Origin: Podarcis melisellensis
Lineage: Eukaryota
DNA length: 64,000 bases
Reading direction: 5' to 3' (one strand)
Assembly: GCA_964234715.1 (NCBI GenBank)
Contig: OZ174275.1
The notes below the pieces were generated by a model, which ran no database searches, was not told the DNA's origin, and worked only from the letters and a program-made list of their open reading frames with translations. This document shows, one piece after another, positions 6,978-17,642 of the stretch. Position 1 is the first letter of the stretch; every line of letters starts with the position of its first letter. The position numbers and the translations under genes were made by a program.

Positions 6978-7312
6978 TTTGGATGGGCAACTAACTGAGG
7001 AGAGAGAGTTGACAGCGGGCAGATAGTTCACAAACACATAAAAATTAAGACTCTTGCAGCACAATTGTACGTTACGCAAATATTGTATATAACAAATGTG
7101 TCCTGCAGCCAAAATGGTGTCCTCAGCTTGTTAGCTTTTATGGGTATGAAGCATTATATGCATTATGCCACATATAACTTTCAAGAAGACAAAAGGAGTT
7201 ATACTTTAGAAGGGTCTTTGCAAGACAGAAGTTATTTAAGTAGTCACCGAGTTAAGTCATTTAAACATTACTAGCAATCTGTAGTCTATAGTTTGTACTT
7301 CTGAAATTCATA

Positions 7313-7720
7313 TGTCAGGGAACTGACATCTAAAGCGACGGAGGCGCAAAGGCTCACTGAGGGTGAGAGAGCAGTAGCAGCGGAAGAGGGAACCAGTAGA
7401 GGGCGAGCAAGAACTCCAAGGGAAAGTGAGTCGGAGGGATGGCTCAGAGACGCTTCAAGCGAAACCAGTGGGGAGGTCTCAGGACCTCCTATAGGGACAC
7501 CCACACCTCGACGGAAACTGTCACGCCGAGAGGCCAGACGACGTGTTTCCGTTAAGGAGCTTTTATGTTGGAAACGTTTCCGAAAGCAGCCACTTTCGGA
7601 TTCTACTAGTGATTGACGCAGCCATGCTGGAGGGGCTCCGTCACAGGCAGAGGTTTGAAAGCCTGATCAAATTCTGAGGGACTTGCATTTTACGCACAAG
7701 CAGCTCATCGTCCCATCACA
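7313..7720 (+). repeat. 5' LTR (408 bp)
   Basis: TGTCAGGGAAC...CCCATCACA; by eye identical to 12383-12790 except T7672 vs C12742. Confidence 0.97.
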
Positions 7721-7722
7721 GC

Positions 7723-7733
7723 AATCCGAAAGT
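7723..7733 (+). promoter_or_regulatory. Self-priming primer-binding site
   Basis: AATCCGAAAGT, 2 nt after the 5' LTR, is the exact reverse complement of ACTTTCGGATT (7592-7602) in the LTR; no TGG-type tRNA PBS. Confidence 0.8.
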
Positions 7734-7766: not shown

Positions 7767-8787
7767 ATGAGCAATCCAGCCGGAACCGGGGAAGCAGGAG
7801 CAGCTGGAGGAGGTCCAAGCCTGGAAGAAAGGTACAGGGCGTTGGAGATCCAGTTGGCGCTGCAAACGGCGAGGCTTGAGGAGAGGAGGGCTCAGGATGC
7901 AGAAAAGGGAAAGGAGAAAACCACCCCGCTCGCCAGAAAGGTGCCAGGATTGGTGCAGAAATTCGGGGGGGGATCCCAGGAACTATCATGCCTTTAGAAC
8001 AGAGATGCAATACGCTCTAAACTTGCAGTTTGATGACTTCCCCGATGAGGAATCGCGAGTGGCGTATGTGATTGGCCATCTCGAATCCGGGGCGAAAGAT
8101 TGGGTTAGACCCCTGATGGCAGCGAATAATGAGATCTTAAAGGACACGAGGAAGTTTTTTCGTGCCATGGACCTGATGTTTTCCAGCGATATTGAGCAGG
8201 GGGTGGTGCGAAGGCAGTTAATGGCTTGCCAGCAAGGAAGCAGATCTGTCCGTGAGTACTGGACTGAATTTACCATGTTGATTCACAAATTGGGGTGGGA
8301 CCTATCGGCGGAGCCCATCCAAATGCTTTTCGAAGAGGGGCTTTCTTCAACCGTCAAAGATGAGCTTTCCCGGGGCCCCAGGGCGGAGTCTATGGACCAG
8401 TTAACCAAATCTGCGCTGGCCATAGGAGCGCGCCAGGAGGCGAGGGCTATGGAAAAGCGGGAAGGGAAAGGAGACCGTTGGAGGGAGTTCCGCATTCCAG
8501 ACATTCCAGAGCCACCTTTCCCGCCGGCAGAGCCGATGGAAGTTGGAACAGCGCGGGCGCGCGCAGTTTCAAATCCCAGTGAAGGGCGGAAAAAGGAGGG
8601 AAAGAGCGCCAAGAGATGTTATCTCTGCCAACAGCCAGGGCACTTTGCCAGAGTTTGCCCACAAAGAAAGGAATGGCAAGGGATGGCAGGAGCTGTTGGG
8701 GGAAAGGAAGAGGAAGGCAAGGAGCAAGTAAAAGCCAACGCCTGGCTGCCACCGTTGGGGCACAGCAGCCAGGCCAAAGAGCAATGA
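7767..8787 (+). CDS. gag: Retrotransposon Gag, interrupted by a 1-nt frameshift in a G8 run (7965-7972)
   Basis: ATG 7767 MSNPAG...VQKFGG joins the next frame DPRNYHAF...HLESGAKDW... if one G is removed; PMEVG motif; CYLCQQPGHFARVC zinc knuckle at 8617-8658. Confidence 0.9.
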
Positions 8788-8795
8788 AAGTGCCC
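8740..8795 (+). promoter_or_regulatory. Predicted H-type RNA pseudoknot at the gag/pol overlap
   Basis: Stem 1 GCCTGGCTGC (8740-8749)/GCAGCCAGGC (8765-8774); stem 2 GGGCAC (8758-8763)/GTGCCC (8790-8795); single A (8764) at the junction. Confidence 0.7.
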
Positions 8796-11700
8796 ATGCC
8801 AGAACCCCCCAGACCCGCTTTAGTGATAGAGGTGTTACTAGAACTGCCAAACGGACACCCACTAAAGGTCAAGGCGCTTTTGGATTCAGGCAGCTCCTGT
8901 AATTTCATGAGTAAGGAGTTTGCAGCTGAGCACCAGATACAGACTATCCCTTTAAGTAACCCCTTGCAGGTGACTACGATTGACGGCAGAGAGCTGTTGG
9001 GGGGAGAAGTTAGCCAACAGACTGTCCCGATGATAATGAGAGTGGCAAGGCACACCGAACAGATAGCGTTTAATGTGGCCATCCTGGGGATGAGCTGGCT
9101 GGCGCTACACGATCCGCTAGTGGGCTGGCATCAGAGGGTGGTCTCCTTTGGGTCAGCGCATTGCCTAGAACACTGCAAGGAGGGGAAGGTTTCGGGAGGA
9201 GACAGAGTCACCCTAGCGGGGATGGAAGTGATGGACAAAGGGAAGGTGCCCCCGCAATACGCAGATCTGAGCAACGTATTCAGCGAAAGGGAAGCAGACA
9301 AACTGCCACCGCATAGACCCTTTGACTGTCAAATCAACCTACTCCCAGGGGCCCAACTCCCAGTAGGCAAGCTGTACGCCATGTCAGACAGGGAGATGCA
9401 GGAGCTGAGGGAGTTCATTGACAAAAACTTGAAGCGAGGTTTCATCAGAGAGTCCCGAGCGGTGGGGGGCAGCCCAGTGTTCTTTGTGGACAAAAAGAAC
9501 ACAGACAAACCGAGACTGGTGTGTGACTTCAGGGCCCTCAATGCAGTGTCGGAGCCCCTGGCTTTCCCTATGCCCCGAATTGATGACATTTTGACCAGAG
9601 TAAGGAAGGGAAAGATTTTTACAAAACTGGACCTGCGGGGGGCGTACAATCTGATACGCATAAGGAAGGGAGATGAATGGAAGACCACCATGTTTACCCC
9701 GTTGGGAGCCTTTGAATACCTCGTTATGCCCTTCGGTCTACAAGGGGGCTCCGCGTGTTTTCAAGCTTTTATAAACCACGTTCTGGGACCTTTGCTCTAC
9801 AAGAATTGTGTGGCCTTTTTAGACGACGTGTTGGTGTATTCGGAAAATGAGGAACAGCATGTGAGGGACGTTCGAGAAGTGTTGGGCAGGCTGCAAGCCA
9901 ACCAGCTGTGGGTGAAACTGGAGAAGTGCCAGTTTCATACCAAGGAGGTGGAATTCCTGGGGTACCGCTTGTCAGACAAGGGATTGGCCATGGATCCAGG
10001 CAAGGTCCAAGCGGTACTGGAATGGAAGACACCGAAGACCAAGAAGGACGTGCAAAGATTCTTGGGATTTGGGAACTTTTATCGGAAGTTCATCAAGAAC
10101 TTTGCCCACTTGACGGCGCCCATCACCGACTGTCTCAGCAGCAAGAAGAAATTTGTTTGGACGGCAGAGGCGGATCGAGCCTTTGAAGAACTGAAAAGGG
10201 CTTTCGCCTCGGAAGAACAACTTCTGCATGTGGATTTACGAAAACCCATGAGAGTGGAAACAGATGCATCCGACCGGGCGGTAGGGGCGGTCCTTCTTCA
10301 ACCGGGGAGGAGTGCGTCGGAGTGGAGACCGTGTGCCTTCTTCTCGCGGAAGCTGAATAAGTCCGAGAGGAATTACACGGTGTATGACAGGGAACTACTT
10401 GCCATTCACGAAGCATTCCGGAGGTGGAGACATTTATTAATTGGGGCACAACACAAGGTGCAAGTGTGCACCGACCACAAAAATTTAGAGTATTGGAGAA
10501 CAGCTCGAGTGCTCAACCAACGACAAGTGAGATGGGCACAGGAATTCTCCAAATTTAACTTTGAGATTTGTTATGTGCCAGGCCCAGAAAACGTCAGGGC
10601 GGACGCGCTCTCACGCAAACCAGAATATTGGGAAGGGGAGGGGGTGATCGAAGAGAGACATGTCATCCCGGAGGACCGCTGGGTGTGTGGGGCGGCGATG
10701 GTGGGGCAACGAGAACTGGTGGAGGAAACGGAAAATGATGAATATGCCCAGGATAAGCTCAGAGGTCTCAGGGGGGAGGGCGAGAGCCCCGGAGGTTTTG
10801 AGGAAAGAAATGGGGCATTGTATTACAAAGGGGCACTGTATATACCCGAAGGTGAATTGAGGGGGAGAGTACTCAAGCAGTTGCATGATAGCCCCACGGC
10901 GGGACATTTTGGGCAACACAAGACCATGTGGTTGGTTACCAGGGAATTTTGGTGGCCTAAGGTGAGGGAAGATGTAAGGGAGTATGTAAGAGGGTGTGAC
11001 CAATGTCAGCGAGCCAAAGGGGAAAGAAGGGCGCCGGCAGGGTTATTAGAACCTTTACCCACACCAGAACGGCCTTGGGAAGCGATATCAATAGATTTTA
11101 TGACGGATCTGCCAAGGTCCAAGGGGAAAACAGCCATCATGGTAGTAGTAGACCTGTTAACTAAGATGTGCCACTTTGTAGCATGCTCACATGCAGTCAC
11201 AGCGGAAGAAACGGCGAAGTTGTTTGTGGAACATATCTTTAGGTTGCACGGGGCTCCCTCGAGGGTGATCTCAGATCGAGGCAAACAATTTACTTCCAGG
11301 TTCTGGAGGAAGCTCATGAGCTTGTTACACGTGGAAGTCAATTTTTCAACTGCCCGGCACCCTGAAACCAACGGGCAGGCGAAAAGGGCAAATGGCATTC
11401 TTCAACAATATCTTAGGTGTTATGTCAATGACAGAGAGAACGATTGGGTCGAAAAGTTGGCGTTGGCAGAATTTGCCTACAATAATGCGGAGAATGTGTC
11501 CACAGGGATGAGTCCCTTTTTGGCTAATTACGGGTGTCACCCCAGGGCATTTCCAGGGGAAGGAGGGGAGAGATGGAGCGTCCCAGCGGCTGAACATTTT
11601 GTAGAAGAGATGGAAGCCATCCATCAGCAGCTCCAGCTCAACTTAGAAAGGGCTAAGGCACAATATAAGAAGCAGGCAGACAAGAACAGAAGGGAAGGTG

Positions 11701-12686
11701 AAACCATAAGGGTGGGGGATCAAGTGTGGTTGTCAACCCAAGGGTTGCCGTTCAAAGGGGGTTGTAAGAAACTGAGGCCCAGAAGATTGGGACCCTTTGA
11801 GGTGATTCAGCAGGTCAACCCGGTAGCTTTCAAACTCCGATTACCCAATCACATGAAATTGCACCCAGTGTTCCACAGGTCGTTACTGTCACCATACAGG
11901 GGAGGAGGTGAAGGGGAGCACGTCAGGGGACCAGCCTTGGAAGAGAGGGAACGCCGCAACCATGTAGCGGAAATCCTCGATTCCAGGTGGAAGGGAAATC
12001 AGGTGGAGTATTTAGTGGCGTGGGAAGGGGAACCGGAGTCAGAAAACACCTGGGTAAGTGCGCAGGAAGTCAATGACGAGGTTTTAACAGAAACGTTCCA
12101 TCAAAGGTTCCCGAGGAAACCTCAGCCGATAGCAAGGTTTAGGAGGGAGTATTTCGGCACCACCGATGAGGAAGAGGAAATGGAAGGGTTCGCGGAGTCG
12201 GAGTTGGAAGAGGGAGTGGACTCTGATGACGAAGAGTACCTAGAGAGTAGGAACAGCAACAAGTGGAAGGAAGTGTTCGCGACGTCGGAAGATGAGGGAG
12301 GTTCTTTCAAGGGTTTTACCTCCTCACCGCCAGTAGGAGAGGAGACGGGAGGGGGTGAAGGGGGCCCTGGAGGGGAGGTGGATGTCAGGGAACTGACATC
12401 TAAAGCGACGGAGGCGCAAAGGCTCACTGAGGGTGAGAGAGCAGTAGCAGCGGAAGAGGGAACCAGTAGAGGGCGAGCAAGAACTCCAAGGGAAAGTGAG
12501 TCGGAGGGATGGCTCAGAGACGCTTCAAGCGAAACCAGTGGGGAGGTCTCAGGACCTCCTATAGGGACACCCACACCTCGACGGAAACTGTCACGCCGAG
12601 AGGCCAGACGACGTGTTTCCGTTAAGGAGCTTTTATGTTGGAAACGTTTCCGAAAGCAGCCACTTTCGGATTCTACTAGTGATTGA
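8784..12686 (+). CDS. pol: Pol polyprotein: aspartic protease, RT, RNase H, integrase, chromodomain, acidic/basic C-terminal extension (frame open from 8616, -1 relative to gag)
   Basis: LLDSGS (PR); LDLRGAY and FLDD (RT); ETDASD, RELLAI, TDHKNL, ADALSR (RH); HDSPTAGH...CDQC, IDF, SDRG, GPF (IN); ILDSR...YLVAWEG...ENTW (chromodomain). Confidence 0.96.
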   Translation: MKVPMPEPPRPALVIEVLLELPNGHPLKVKALLDSGSSCNFMSKEFAAEHQIQTIPLSNPLQVTTIDGRELLGGEVSQQTVPMIMRVARHTEQIAFNVAILGMSWLALHDPLVGWHQRVVSFGSAHCLEHCKEGKVSGGDRVTLAGMEVMDKGKVPPQYADLSNVFSEREADKLPPHRPFDCQINLLPGAQLPVGKLYAMSDREMQELREFIDKNLKRGFIRESRAVGGSPVFFVDKKNTDKPRLVCDFRALNAVSEPLAFPMPRIDDILTRVRKGKIFTKLDLRGAYNLIRIRKGDEWKTTMFTPLGAFEYLVMPFGLQGGSACFQAFINHVLGPLLYKNCVAFLDDVLVYSENEEQHVRDVREVLGRLQANQLWVKLEKCQFHTKEVEFLGYRLSDKGLAMDPGKVQAVLEWKTPKTKKDVQRFLGFGNFYRKFIKNFAHLTAPITDCLSSKKKFVWTAEADRAFEELKRAFASEEQLLHVDLRKPMRVETDASDRAVGAVLLQPGRSASEWRPCAFFSRKLNKSERNYTVYDRELLAIHEAFRRWRHLLIGAQHKVQVCTDHKNLEYWRTARVLNQRQVRWAQEFSKFNFEICYVPGPENVRADALSRKPEYWEGEGVIEERHVIPEDRWVCGAAMVGQRELVEETENDEYAQDKLRGLRGEGESPGGFEERNGALYYKGALYIPEGELRGRVLKQLHDSPTAGHFGQHKTMWLVTREFWWPKVREDVREYVRGCDQCQRAKGERRAPAGLLEPLPTPERPWEAISIDFMTDLPRSKGKTAIMVVVDLLTKMCHFVACSHAVTAEETAKLFVEHIFRLHGAPSRVISDRGKQFTSRFWRKLMSLLHVEVNFSTARHPETNGQAKRANGILQQYLRCYVNDRENDWVEKLALAEFAYNNAENVSTGMSPFLANYGCHPRAFPGEGGERWSVPAAEHFVEEMEAIHQQLQLNLERAKAQYKKQADKNRREGETIRVGDQVWLSTQGLPFKGGCKKLRPRRLGPFEVIQQVNPVAFKLRLPNHMKLHPVFHRSLLSPYRGGGEGEHVRGPALEERERRNHVAEILDSRWKGNQVEYLVAWEGEPESENTWVSAQEVNDEVLTETFHQRFPRKPQPIARFRREYFGTTDEEEEMEGFAESELEEGVDSDDEEYLESRNSNKWKEVFATSEDEGGSFKGFTSSPPVGEETGGGEGGPGGEVDVRELTSKATEAQRLTEGERAVAAEEGTSRGRARTPRESESEGWLRDASSETSGEVSGPPIGTPTPRRKLSRREARRRVSVKELLCWKRFRKQPLSDSTSD
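12369..12382 (+). promoter_or_regulatory. Polypurine tract
   Basis: GGAGGGGAGGTGGA directly before the TG of the 3' LTR. Confidence 0.85.
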
Positions 12687-12790
12687 CGCAGCCATGCTGG
12701 AGGGGCTCCGTCACAGGCAGAGGTTTGAAAGCCTGATCAAACTCTGAGGGACTTGCATTTTACGCACAAGCAGCTCATCGTCCCATCACA
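12383..12790 (+). repeat. 3' LTR (408 bp); first ~300 nt lie inside the pol ORF
   Basis: Direct repeat of 7313-7720, followed by TSD TCATA; pol stop codon ends at 12686. Confidence 0.97.
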
Positions 12791-13521
12791 TCATAGTTTC
12801 ATTTGCAAAAAAAAACCCCCAACATCACTGCATATTACTTTTAATCATCATAATCTAATAATAGATTTCTCCATTCCCCTCAAAATACTATACTGGAGGT
12901 ATCTTAGAGATCTGTCATCTGATAAGTTCATTGCTACTCACCATCCAAACAGCTTTGCTGTGCTAATATATTTTGGGAAGTTCATTAGTTGTTCATCTGT
13001 TCTTTTCTCCTCCCCCTCATCCTAAGAGGCTGCCATAATATAAAATACCATTTCCCCAGCATGAAAAAAATGTCAGGGATCCTGACCTTAACGCCAGGAA
13101 AAAATGGAATGGAAGCCAATAGTAGCAACCGCCATAGCGTTTTATCCTTGAAGCAAATCTCATCACAGCTGAACTGTGATTTTAGCAACAGTATTTCTTT
13201 ATTACAACTACTTCTTAGCAGCAGTAGTAATGTGTTAATGATACTGCATTGTTAAGTGAATAGCTAAAGATGGGACAAGGATGAAACAGAAGTCTCAGTT
13301 CTCGGATAATGTCAGTGATCTCAGCAGCAAAAAATTACTTTAAACTAAAACGAAGATACAGCTACAGATGACCAGCAATAGTAAAACAGGTTATGCATTC
13401 TCATTACACTGGAGAATTAGAGTTCCATTTTGGCATACAGGATTTCATAAAGCGTACTTTTAGATTCATACAAATTTCATCCACATTGAAGAACGTGGAA
13501 ATAGCTTTAGAAATCAATTAC

Positions 13522-15237: not shown

Positions 15238-16404
15238 CCGTATTTTTCGCACCATAGGACGCACCGGACAATAGGACGCACCTTGTTTTAGAGGGAGGAG
15301 AACAAGGAAAAAAAATTCTTCCGCTCTCTGACCAGTGCCCCTTCAGCAAAGCGGCAGGAAGCGCTGCGCAGAGAGTGGGAGAATTTTCCCCCTCTTGTTT
15401 TCCCACTCTAAAACAAGGTGCCATTTAAGGTGCGTTCAGGTGGCTACCTTGGAAGCCTGGAGAGCTAGAGGGGTCAGTGCGCACCGACCCCTCTCGCTCT
15501 CCTGGCTTCAGGTTCCTTTCGACCTGCTCTTTGGGGCTGGCGGGGGGAAGCCCACCACCAGCCCCAAAGAGCAGGTCTGGGAGCAGTGGAAAGGCGCAGC
15601 GGAGAGGCTGCTGCCATACTCACGCGTCACTTCTCCAGCTGGGAGAGGGTCGCGGGGCTATGGCTTCTTTATCCCCGTCCGCGCTCTCCCGGCTGGAGAG
15701 GTGACGCACGGCTATTGAGGCTCCTGCCATAGCCGCGCGTCACCTCTCCAGCCGGGAGAGGGTCGCGAGGGGCTGCTTTAGTCCCGCGCGCGCTCTCCCG
15801 GCTGGAGAGGTGATGCGCGGCTATGGAGGCTCCTGCCATAGCCGCGCGTCACCTCTCCAGCCGGGAGAGGGTCGTGAGGGGCTGCTTTAGCTCCGCGCGC
15901 GCTCTCCGGGCTGGAGAGGTGACGCGCGGTTATGGAGGCTCCTGCCATAGCCGCGCGTCGCCTCTCCAGCCGGGAGAGTGTCGCGGGGGGCTGCTTTAGC
16001 TCCGCGCGCGCTCTCCGGGCTGGAGAGGTGACGCGCGGTTATGGAGGCTCCTGCCAGAGCCGCGCGTCACCTCTCCAGCCGGGAGAGCGTCACGAGGGGC
16101 TGCTTTAGCTCCGCGCGCGCTCTCCGGGCTGGAGAGGTGACGCGCGGCTATGGAGGCTCCTGCCATAGCCGCGCGTCACCTCTCCAGCCGGGAGAGGGTC
16201 GCGAGGGGCTGCTTTAGCTCCGCGCGAGCTCTCCCGGCTGGAGAGGTGACGCGCGGCTATGGAGGCACCTGCCTGAGCCGCGCGTCACCTCTCCAACCGG
16301 GAGAGGGTCGCGGGGCTATGGTGTCTTCGCTCCATAGGACGCACACACATTTCCCCTTCATTTTTGAAGGGGAAAAAGTGCGTCCTATAGAGCGAAAAAT
16401 ACGG
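15238..16404 (+). mobile_element. Tc2/pogo-type MITE containing a tandem palindrome array
   Basis: TA|CCGTATTTTTCGCACCATAGGACGCAC...GTGCGTCCTATAGAGCGAAAAATACGG|TA. Confidence 0.9.
15603..16321. repeat. GC-rich minisatellite, 109-bp unit, ~6.5 copies, built of alternating 34-bp inverted arms
   Basis: C(T/A)CCTGCC recurs at 15721, 15830, 15939, 16048, 16157 and 16266. Confidence 0.95.
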
Positions 16405-17019: not shown

Positions 17020-17642
17020 TTCTTTTAAAATGCATTGTTTATTGGTTTTTCCCCTTAACAGCACAAAGAAGGAAAAAGAAAATATATCAGCAAAACATGT
17101 CCATTCATAAAAACATTATACAAAATCAGGCACATGTGGAAACCAATAATAAAAAACAAGAAAGAGGGGAGAGGGAGTCAGACAGGAAAGGATAAAGCTC
17201 TGGCCGAGCCCGTACTACATGCATATTGCACCAATAGCTCTAGATGGGATCTCAGAAAAGTTGTGCCCTTTGCACCTCTAGGCAAAAGCAGCTTTTTCAT
17301 AAACTGCAAGAGAGGAAAGATTCTCCAACCAACAAGCTATGAGAGGAGCCTGTACTACATGCATATTGCACCAATAGCTCTAGATGGGATCTCAGAAAAG
17401 TTGTGCCCTTTGCACCTCTAGGCAAAAGCAGCTTTTTCATAAACTGCAAGAGAGGAAAGATTCTCCAACCAACAAGCTATGAGAGGAGCCATCCAGTCCT
17501 TCCAATGCTGTAAAACCTGTTGGTTAGCTACCAATAAAGCGTGCAGGATCCAGCTGTGTTGTCTCTCCTTCAAGTTCCAAAACACTTGGATATAATGTGT
17601 AACATGAACATACAAAGATTTCAGAGACATTCTCAGGAGCAA
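17020..17642 (-). mobile_element. L1/Tx1-like ORF2 C-terminal and 3' UTR fragment
   Basis: Minus ORF IQVFW...ILHALLVANQQVLQHWK...WLENLSSLAVYEK resembles the L1 ORF2 C-terminus; AATAAA near 17040 on the minus strand. Confidence 0.55.
17211..17490. repeat. 140-bp tandem duplication
   Basis: 17211-17350 equals 17351-17490 apart from the first base. Confidence 0.95.

Follow-up and report, generated by a model that had tools for sequence, protein, structure and literature searches.

How does a chromodomain-bearing retrotransposon find its insertion sites when its chromodomain has lost most of the aromatic residues expected to read methylated histones? The question is raised by a chromovirus of the Ty3/Gypsy type that lies in a 64,000-nucleotide stretch of the lizard Podarcis melisellensis (contig OZ174275.1, GenBank assembly GCA_964234715.1; hereafter the window). 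The pol protein of this element continues beyond the chromodomain into an acidic tail, in which a sequence-only reading of the window had pointed to two tandem motifs resembling those by which host proteins bind the integrase-binding domain (IBD) of LEDGF/p75. Our comparisons indicate that the motifs are real, selected short linear motifs, kept by purifying selection on the protein. The best explanation, to which we give a probability of about one half, is that the tail copies the host motif and docks the IBD of LEDGF or HRP-2 for integration tethering.

On the plus strand, positions 12138–12317 read without stops and in frame in pol as FRREYFGTTDEEEEMEGF, a 24-residue acidic spacer (12192–12263) and WKEVFATSEDEGGSFKGF. 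Motif 1 occupies 12138–12191 (pol residues 1175–1192) and motif 2 occupies 12264–12317 (residues 1217–1234), with translations identical to those of the sequence-only reading. That reading had also placed the motifs directly after the chromodomain; the Pfam match to this domain ends at residue 1164 and motif 1 starts at residue 1175, 10 residues past it. In motif 1, a YF anchor precedes an 8-residue linker of threonine and acidic residues (GTTDEEEE) and MEGF. In motif 2, a W..VF anchor is followed by a 9-residue S/T/acidic linker (ATSEDEGGS) and FKGF. Each linker contains two sites of the S/T-x-x-D/E type preferred by CK2, four in total.

The host motif has been defined in three parts. [quoted passage not shown] Several proteins, JPO2 included, carry more than one such motif (PMC9987994). 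The IBD-binding motif (IBM) of DPF3a reads LFGSTSESDTSTFHGFDEDD, with the consensus (S/E)xFxGF (HRP2–DPF3a paper, PMC7337902), and the motif of fly JIL-1 reads DFxGFDE. The layout originally suggested for the tail, a helix ending in Phe, an S/T-plus-acidic linker with CK2-type sites and then (F/M)xGF, agrees with these definitions (PMC9987994, PMC7337902), and both linker lengths fall inside the published range. Motif 2 (VF-ATSEDEGGS-FKGF) matches the published layout position by position, as does the motif of a distant relative described below as lineage C (LF-TPTLSAST-FQGF-SSDEE). All the sequence features of a LEDGF/HRP2-type TIM are present. Cellular IBMs and TIMs (DPF3a, IWS1 TIM3, JPO2/CDCA7L, KMT2A/MLL1, POGZ, CDC7-ASK, MED1 and Drosophila JIL-1) have in common with the tail a hydrophobic-Phe anchor, an 8–10-residue acidic or S/T linker, CK2-type sites, FxGF and a location in a disordered region; acidic residues often follow their FxGF, likewise here, and the tandem arrangement is that of JPO2. 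The tail is unlike them in being carried by a retrotransposon integrase and not a host transcription factor, in having MxGF in motif 1 and a W/F before the anchor, and in that its binding is a prediction.

Short linear motifs are expected in disordered regions, and the tail is predicted to be one. When the chromodomain and tail were modelled together with AlphaFold2 from an alignment of 11 family sequences, the per-residue confidence (predicted local distance difference test, pLDDT) was about 70–79 in the chromodomain and about 40 in the tail, staying below 50 for everything from residue 1173 on. A single 4-residue helix was modelled, just before the motif 1 anchor; helices induced by binding are invisible in a model of the free chain. 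The low tail confidence points to motifs that sit in an intrinsically disordered region.

With 26 D/E among its 92 residues (pol 1165–1256), the tail is strongly acidic, and its likeness to the host motif was compared with what its composition yields by chance. In 200,000 composition-preserving shuffles, we counted a pattern of hydrophobic-Phe, a 7–12-residue linker (at least half D/E/S/T, no K/R) and [FLM]xGF. The fraction of shuffles with at least one such pattern was 9e-4, and with at least two, 5.5e-5. As a cleaner, independent control, we scanned 165,644 residues of 156 further chromovirus proteins retrieved by our searches with a relaxed form of the pattern; it matched twice, each time at the F(L/V)GF of the reverse transcriptase fold, and no C-terminal tail among those proteins matched it. 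The rarity in shuffles and in the control proteins argues that the motifs are not a product of chance. Three other known motifs were considered by eye and rejected: FFAT, because the upstream flank is basic instead of acidic and a G stands at an acidic position; LIR, because the acidic lead-in is absent and the sequence is not conserved; and the DEF/Y histone-binding motif, because the P0003 subfamily has not kept the spacer's DEEY. An ESM Atlas feature search with the tail gave a best score of 0.78, under the noise level.

Next, relatives of the tail were collected. Word-indexed searches gave three 90% clusters of Podarcis muralis proteins that share the tail and are 74–85% identical there, and a HMMER search of 1.84 billion representatives with the integrase plus tail gave three further, more distant lineages. 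All members of the three clusters retain both motifs, while the spacer varies by substitutions and an 8-residue indel among the subfamilies. P0044 (72% identity, Logan contig L003) has QF-ATTDEEEED-FVGF as motif 1 and VF-ESTDDDSSS-FRGF as motif 2, and P0041 (61% identity, European Nucleotide Archive contig L002) has WKTVF-ESDENEDTD-FLGF as motif 2; the spacer of the window copy is unalignable with the spacers of either. The third lineage, lineage C (P0045 and kin from P. muralis, 53% identical in the integrase), carries DDWLF-TPTLSAST-FQGF followed by SSDEE at the motif 1 position, and motif 2 is not kept. Lineage C consists of seven subfamilies with 60–80% mutual identity over the chromodomain and tail; FDDWLF-TP(T/P)LSAST-F[QRH]GF is invariant in all seven, and downstream of it the sequence drifts, a second SxSGF not being kept.

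Alignment of these relatives supports the sequence-only reading at a point on which it could have failed, because their aromatic and FxGF positions have been retained amid drifting linkers and spacers. Conservation extends to the anchors YF, VF and LF and to a W/F four residues before the anchor Phe. The x of FxGF in motif 2 is K, R, W, Q or L among relatives, and the first of the final four residues of motif 1 is M in the window copy, L in the sister subfamilies (LEGF) and F in P0044 and lineage C. When all lineages are aligned, invariance in the tail outside the stretch coded by the polypurine region is limited to one acidic spacer residue and to the G and GF of the two motifs. Motifs 1 and 2 of all lineages can also be aligned with one another gap-free, a sign that a single module was duplicated in tandem.

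Codon comparisons were then used to separate selection on the protein from selection on the DNA. Between the window copy and its relative L001, synonymous divergence (dS) is about 0.7 across pol, and the ratio of non-synonymous to synonymous divergence is 0.05 in the reverse transcriptase, 0.04 in the integrase, 0.16 in the chromodomain, 0.33 in the spacer and 0.20 in motif 2. Motif 1 shows nine synonymous differences and one non-synonymous difference, a conservative M-to-L change. In the 22 residues around motif 2, 13 differ from L003 and L002, and none of W, V, F, F, G and F has been replaced; four of these six have different codons in L003, where the Phe and Gly codons have changed. The hypergeometric probability that 9 conserved positions of 22 include those six is 560/497,420, or 1.1e-3. 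Such synonymous change under kept residues indicates that selection acts on the protein.

These comparisons bear on the view that the tail has no peptide function and reflects a nucleic-acid constraint (a polypurine tract, 3′ end processing or cis elements near the long terminal repeat, LTR) or is the by-product of a purine-rich sequence. The motifs lie 65–245 bases upstream of the 3′ LTR, next to a purine-rich tract (12341–12382, plus strand) that is a polypurine-tract candidate and doubles as code for G/E-rich pol residues, and GAR codons yield acidic residues and purine runs alike. Moreover, the last 40 or so bases running from the end of the purine tract into the LTR (from 12357) are DNA-identical between the distant copies of the window and L001, which does suggest a cis-acting constraint there. 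The motifs behave differently: their synonymous sites are saturated and their residues kept, and their Phe codons (TTY) break purine runs. DNA-level constraint as the cause of motif conservation is ruled out by the codon comparisons with L001, L003 and L002, and the shuffles and control proteins speak against chance, so that this whole class of explanation, already largely refuted, appears very improbable.

Conservation shows function and not the identity of the partner, and two other protein-level explanations were therefore weighed. First, the motifs may be docking peptides for a different partner, either another TND protein (IWS1, TFIIS, Elongin A, PPP1R10/PNUTS or MED26) or an unrelated reader of acidic-aromatic peptides, in which case they could have a role, for example, in stability, nuclear import or coupling to elongating polymerase II. 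For TIMs as a class, the helix and the acidic linker suffice to bind several TNDs (PMC9987994), and the W/F that is conserved four positions before the anchor Phe falls outside the published IBM consensus. Against this, FxGF is required specifically by LEDGF/HRP2; for other TNDs it is either dispensable or missing (PMC9987994). GF is the sole invariant pair in the tail across lineages. We regard a partner other than LEDGF/HRP-2 as unlikely, if a serious candidate.

Second, the tail may bind histones or nucleosomes in the manner of a chaperone, or fold back on the integrase or chromodomain as a regulatory element, with the IBM likeness being convergent and of no consequence. It is acidic and adjoins the chromodomain, a chromodomain without its cage might need a helper, and acidic stretches with F/Y anchors are generally known to bind H2A–H2B. 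Acidic regions of this kind tolerate scrambling, whereas here neither the precise spacing nor the G of FxGF varies, and the acidic residues are exchanged freely; the lineage C linker TPTLSAST is without any acidic residue, and the DEEY of the spacer is not conserved. This explanation seems to us improbable.

Docking to LEDGF or HRP-2 thus remains the preferred explanation, and we propose the following course for it. Within the pre-integration complex, the motifs would dock the TFIIS-N-terminal-type domain (the IBD) of LEDGF/p75, HRP-2 or both. These are readers of H3K36me2/3, and the integrase would thereby be tethered to transcribed chromatin. Two copies of the motif would add avidity, and CK2 phosphorylation would raise affinity. 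The interface would differ from the folded catalytic-core contact of the lentiviruses, and tethering through the motifs might functionally replace methyl-lysine reading by the decayed cage of the chromodomain.

Several observations weigh against LEDGF/HRP-2 docking. In the window copy, M replaces the first F of FxGF in motif 1, which makes this motif a partial fit only, and the motif 1 of P0041 is degenerate, reading FAPF. Because the shuffle pattern was written with the data already in view, the shuffle figures are generous. The named relatives all belong to a single lizard genus, so that the copies share ancestry and host. A phmmer search of the tail and an hmmsearch of the motif profile against Protein Data Bank (PDB) sequences returned only chance-level matches (glycerophosphate oxidase; IsdH at E of about 2.5) and no known IBM peptides, both being uninformative for a motif of about 15 residues. 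Acidic tails studded with aromatics can also have, for instance, histones or other TNDs as partners, and both IBD docking and gene-body targeting are what we infer from sequence.

The state of the chromodomain bears on whether one targeting device took the place of another. The domain (pol residues 1117–1164; 11964–12107, plus strand) is recognized by Pfam as PF00385 with an E value of 1e-8, and its cage is degenerate. Using cage positions that we take to correspond to those of HP1, all three cage aromatics (Y..W.G[YF]) are found in 69 of 95 control chromoviruses with a recognizable chromodomain, and the third in 87 of 95. The window copy reads N..W.GE, two of the three being gone, and thus lacks the three-aromatic arrangement of canonical (group I) chromodomains. 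All members of the motif-bearing clade have E or T at the third position and, apart from the P0003 subfamily with its Y, carry N, S or H at the first. In lineage C the cage W is replaced too, and Pfam no longer detects the chromodomain.

A maximum-likelihood tree of the integrase region (72 rows, quick IQ-TREE search) set the ten motif-bearing rows together apart from all others by a branch of length 0.61 with an SH-aLRT support of 100, and the path from the window copy to P0045 exceeds one substitution per site. In the nearest outgroups (about 39–47% identical), a short basic tail ends the protein soon after the chromodomain and the acidic extension is absent, so that the tail was gained at the base of the motif-bearing clade. 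The tree indicates a single origin of the motifs, at the base of this clade of lizard chromoviruses. Cage loss and motif gain in one clade fit a change of targeting device. The full form of this idea is that the clade let its cage decay and evolved a phosphorylation-regulated, tandem mimic of the LEDGF/HRP-2 motif, as the first LTR retrotransposon to work through an IBD/TND and convergently with lentiviruses; we hold it tentatively, at a little under an even chance.

Tethering of an integrase to a chromatin reader is known in kind. The outcome proposed here, tethering to gene bodies via the IBD/TND of an H3K36me reader, is that of HIV-1 integrase with LEDGF/p75 and HRP-2. HIV-1 uses a folded interface of the catalytic-core dimer, whereas a disordered peptide would here fill the groove of the cellular partners; a different surface bound to the same host domain would make this, if docking is true, a convergent use of the domain. 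In murine leukaemia virus (MLV), a short disordered peptide at the C-terminus of the integrase copies a host motif, binds the ET domain of BET proteins and biases integration. This is likewise mimicry of a chromatin-reader ligand by a tail peptide, but the MLV peptide alternates hydrophobic and basic residues where the present one is acidic and aromatic, its partner reads acetyl-lysine instead of H3K36me, and it leads to promoters and enhancers instead of gene bodies. In Ty5, a few phosphorylation-regulated residues at the integrase C-terminus set the target chromatin through the partner Sir4. Ty5 thus also offers a short C-terminal determinant in an LTR retrotransposon; it differs in being a Ty1/copia element with a heterochromatin target and an unrelated motif and partner. 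The chromodomain chromoviruses of the MAGGY and Tf1 group are elements of the same type, with a chromodomain ending the integrase. Canonical chromodomains read H3K9 methylation via three aromatics, which the motif-bearing clade has mostly lost while adding an acidic tail.

The TND review lists lentiviral integrases as the only viral users of the domain (PMC9987994). Fly LTR elements prefer active genes, and a 2023 study of them stated that there were no data for an interaction between fly LEDGF and their integrases (PMC10018349). The sequence-only reading had known of no such case in an LTR retrotransposon, and our full-text literature searches likewise turned up no paper joining an IBD-binding motif or a TND with retrotransposons or chromoviruses. 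The copying of an IBD-binding peptide by an LTR retrotransposon therefore appears to be undescribed.

The choice of integration site sets the harm that an element does to its host and the time for which it persists, and the tethers that are understood are few: HIV–LEDGF, MLV–BET, Ty1/Ty3–Pol III, Ty5–Sir4 and chromodomain–H3K9me. If true, LEDGF/HRP-2 docking would add a new mechanism to these, would mean that a retroelement other than the lentiviruses had independently come to exploit the IBD groove, and would provide a natural case of short-motif mimicry evolving in a transposon, along with a compact peptide module with which integration into H3K36me-marked chromatin could be studied or redirected. 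The idea is open to peptide tests, and the apparent current activity of the family opens it to population-insertion data as well.

The element that carries the tail is complete, and it is the only copy of its family within the window. All of its features lie on the plus strand. Identical 5-base target-site duplications (TCATA) at 7308–7312 and 12791–12795 enclose two 408-bp LTRs, at 7313–7720 and 12383–12790, which form a direct repeat with TG...CA ends and one mismatch in 408 bases. Between them lie a gag open reading frame (ORF) at 7876–8787, with Pfam matches to Retrotrans_gag, Ty3_capsid and zf-CCHC, and a pol ORF of 1356 amino acids at 8616–12686, which overlaps gag in the −1 frame and runs into the 3′ LTR, the first 304 bases of which code for the final 100 residues of pol together with its stop codon. 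In pol, Pfam finds an aspartyl protease, reverse transcriptase, RNase H, the zinc finger, core and SH3 domains of the integrase, and the chromodomain, followed by the acidic tail. All ORFs of the element are intact. The LTRs with target-site duplication, gag, the order protease–reverse transcriptase–RNase H–integrase and the chromodomain at the integrase C-terminus place it among the chromoviruses of Ty3/Gypsy, and its near-identical LTRs mark it as a very young insertion.

Three further features of the element were observed. GGGAAAG heptamers in gag phase at 8598 and 8700 (region 8583–8787) are candidate −1 frameshift sites. An 11-base perfect complementarity links LTR positions 7592–7602 (ACTTTCGGATT) with 7723–7733, 3 bases past the 5′ LTR, at the place expected for a primer-binding site, which is the signature of self-priming of the Tf1 type and not of tRNA priming. 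Last, the part of pol encoded in the U3 region of the LTR (12383–12686; also 7313–7616) forms a basic integrase C-terminus (RRKLSRRE.RRRVSVKELLCWKRFRK...), and its segment ..LLCWKR.. is kept in all lineages, including the 61%-identical one (GLLCWKR). This suggests either a second functional element, such as a nuclear localization signal or a DNA-binding region, or a dual coding and cis constraint.

Sequencing data show that the chromovirus family is very abundant. Parts of the window are present in DNA runs of eight organisms, and the contig depth summed over the element is 10^4–10^5, compared with 9–11 over unique flank, a sum of depths and not a copy number. At the 3′ flank, contigs from two sources, another sample bearing the same species label (X4) and a second organism (X5), start matching at exactly 12791, the first base of the target-site duplication, and extend upstream with non-LTR sequence for 665 letters (X4) and about 518 (X5). 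These contigs look like the empty site, and the insertion may thus be polymorphic and very recent. Contigs of the family also occur in runs of one organism that we take to be RNA, which makes expression of the family likely; the family appears to be currently active.

The surroundings of the insertion, which the sequence-only reading took to be apparently intronic, were also surveyed. The eight largest flanking ORFs gave no Pfam domain match, and the 3′ flank is touched by low-depth contigs from putative RNA runs, a signal too weak to call a transcription unit. Elsewhere, the P. muralis gene model P0028, annotated as a vomeronasal type-2 receptor 26-like protein, includes an 82%-identical integrase fragment of the family, and this model has swallowed an insertion inside a receptor gene. 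Finally, two tandem repeats lie downstream of the element in the window: a GC-rich array at 15604–16312 with 6.5 copies of a 109-bp unit (92% matches), each unit carrying an internal inverted repeat (CTCTCCAGCCGGGAGAG / CTCTCCCGGCTGGAGAG), and, at 17206–17490, two tandem copies of a 140-bp unit that are 99% identical.

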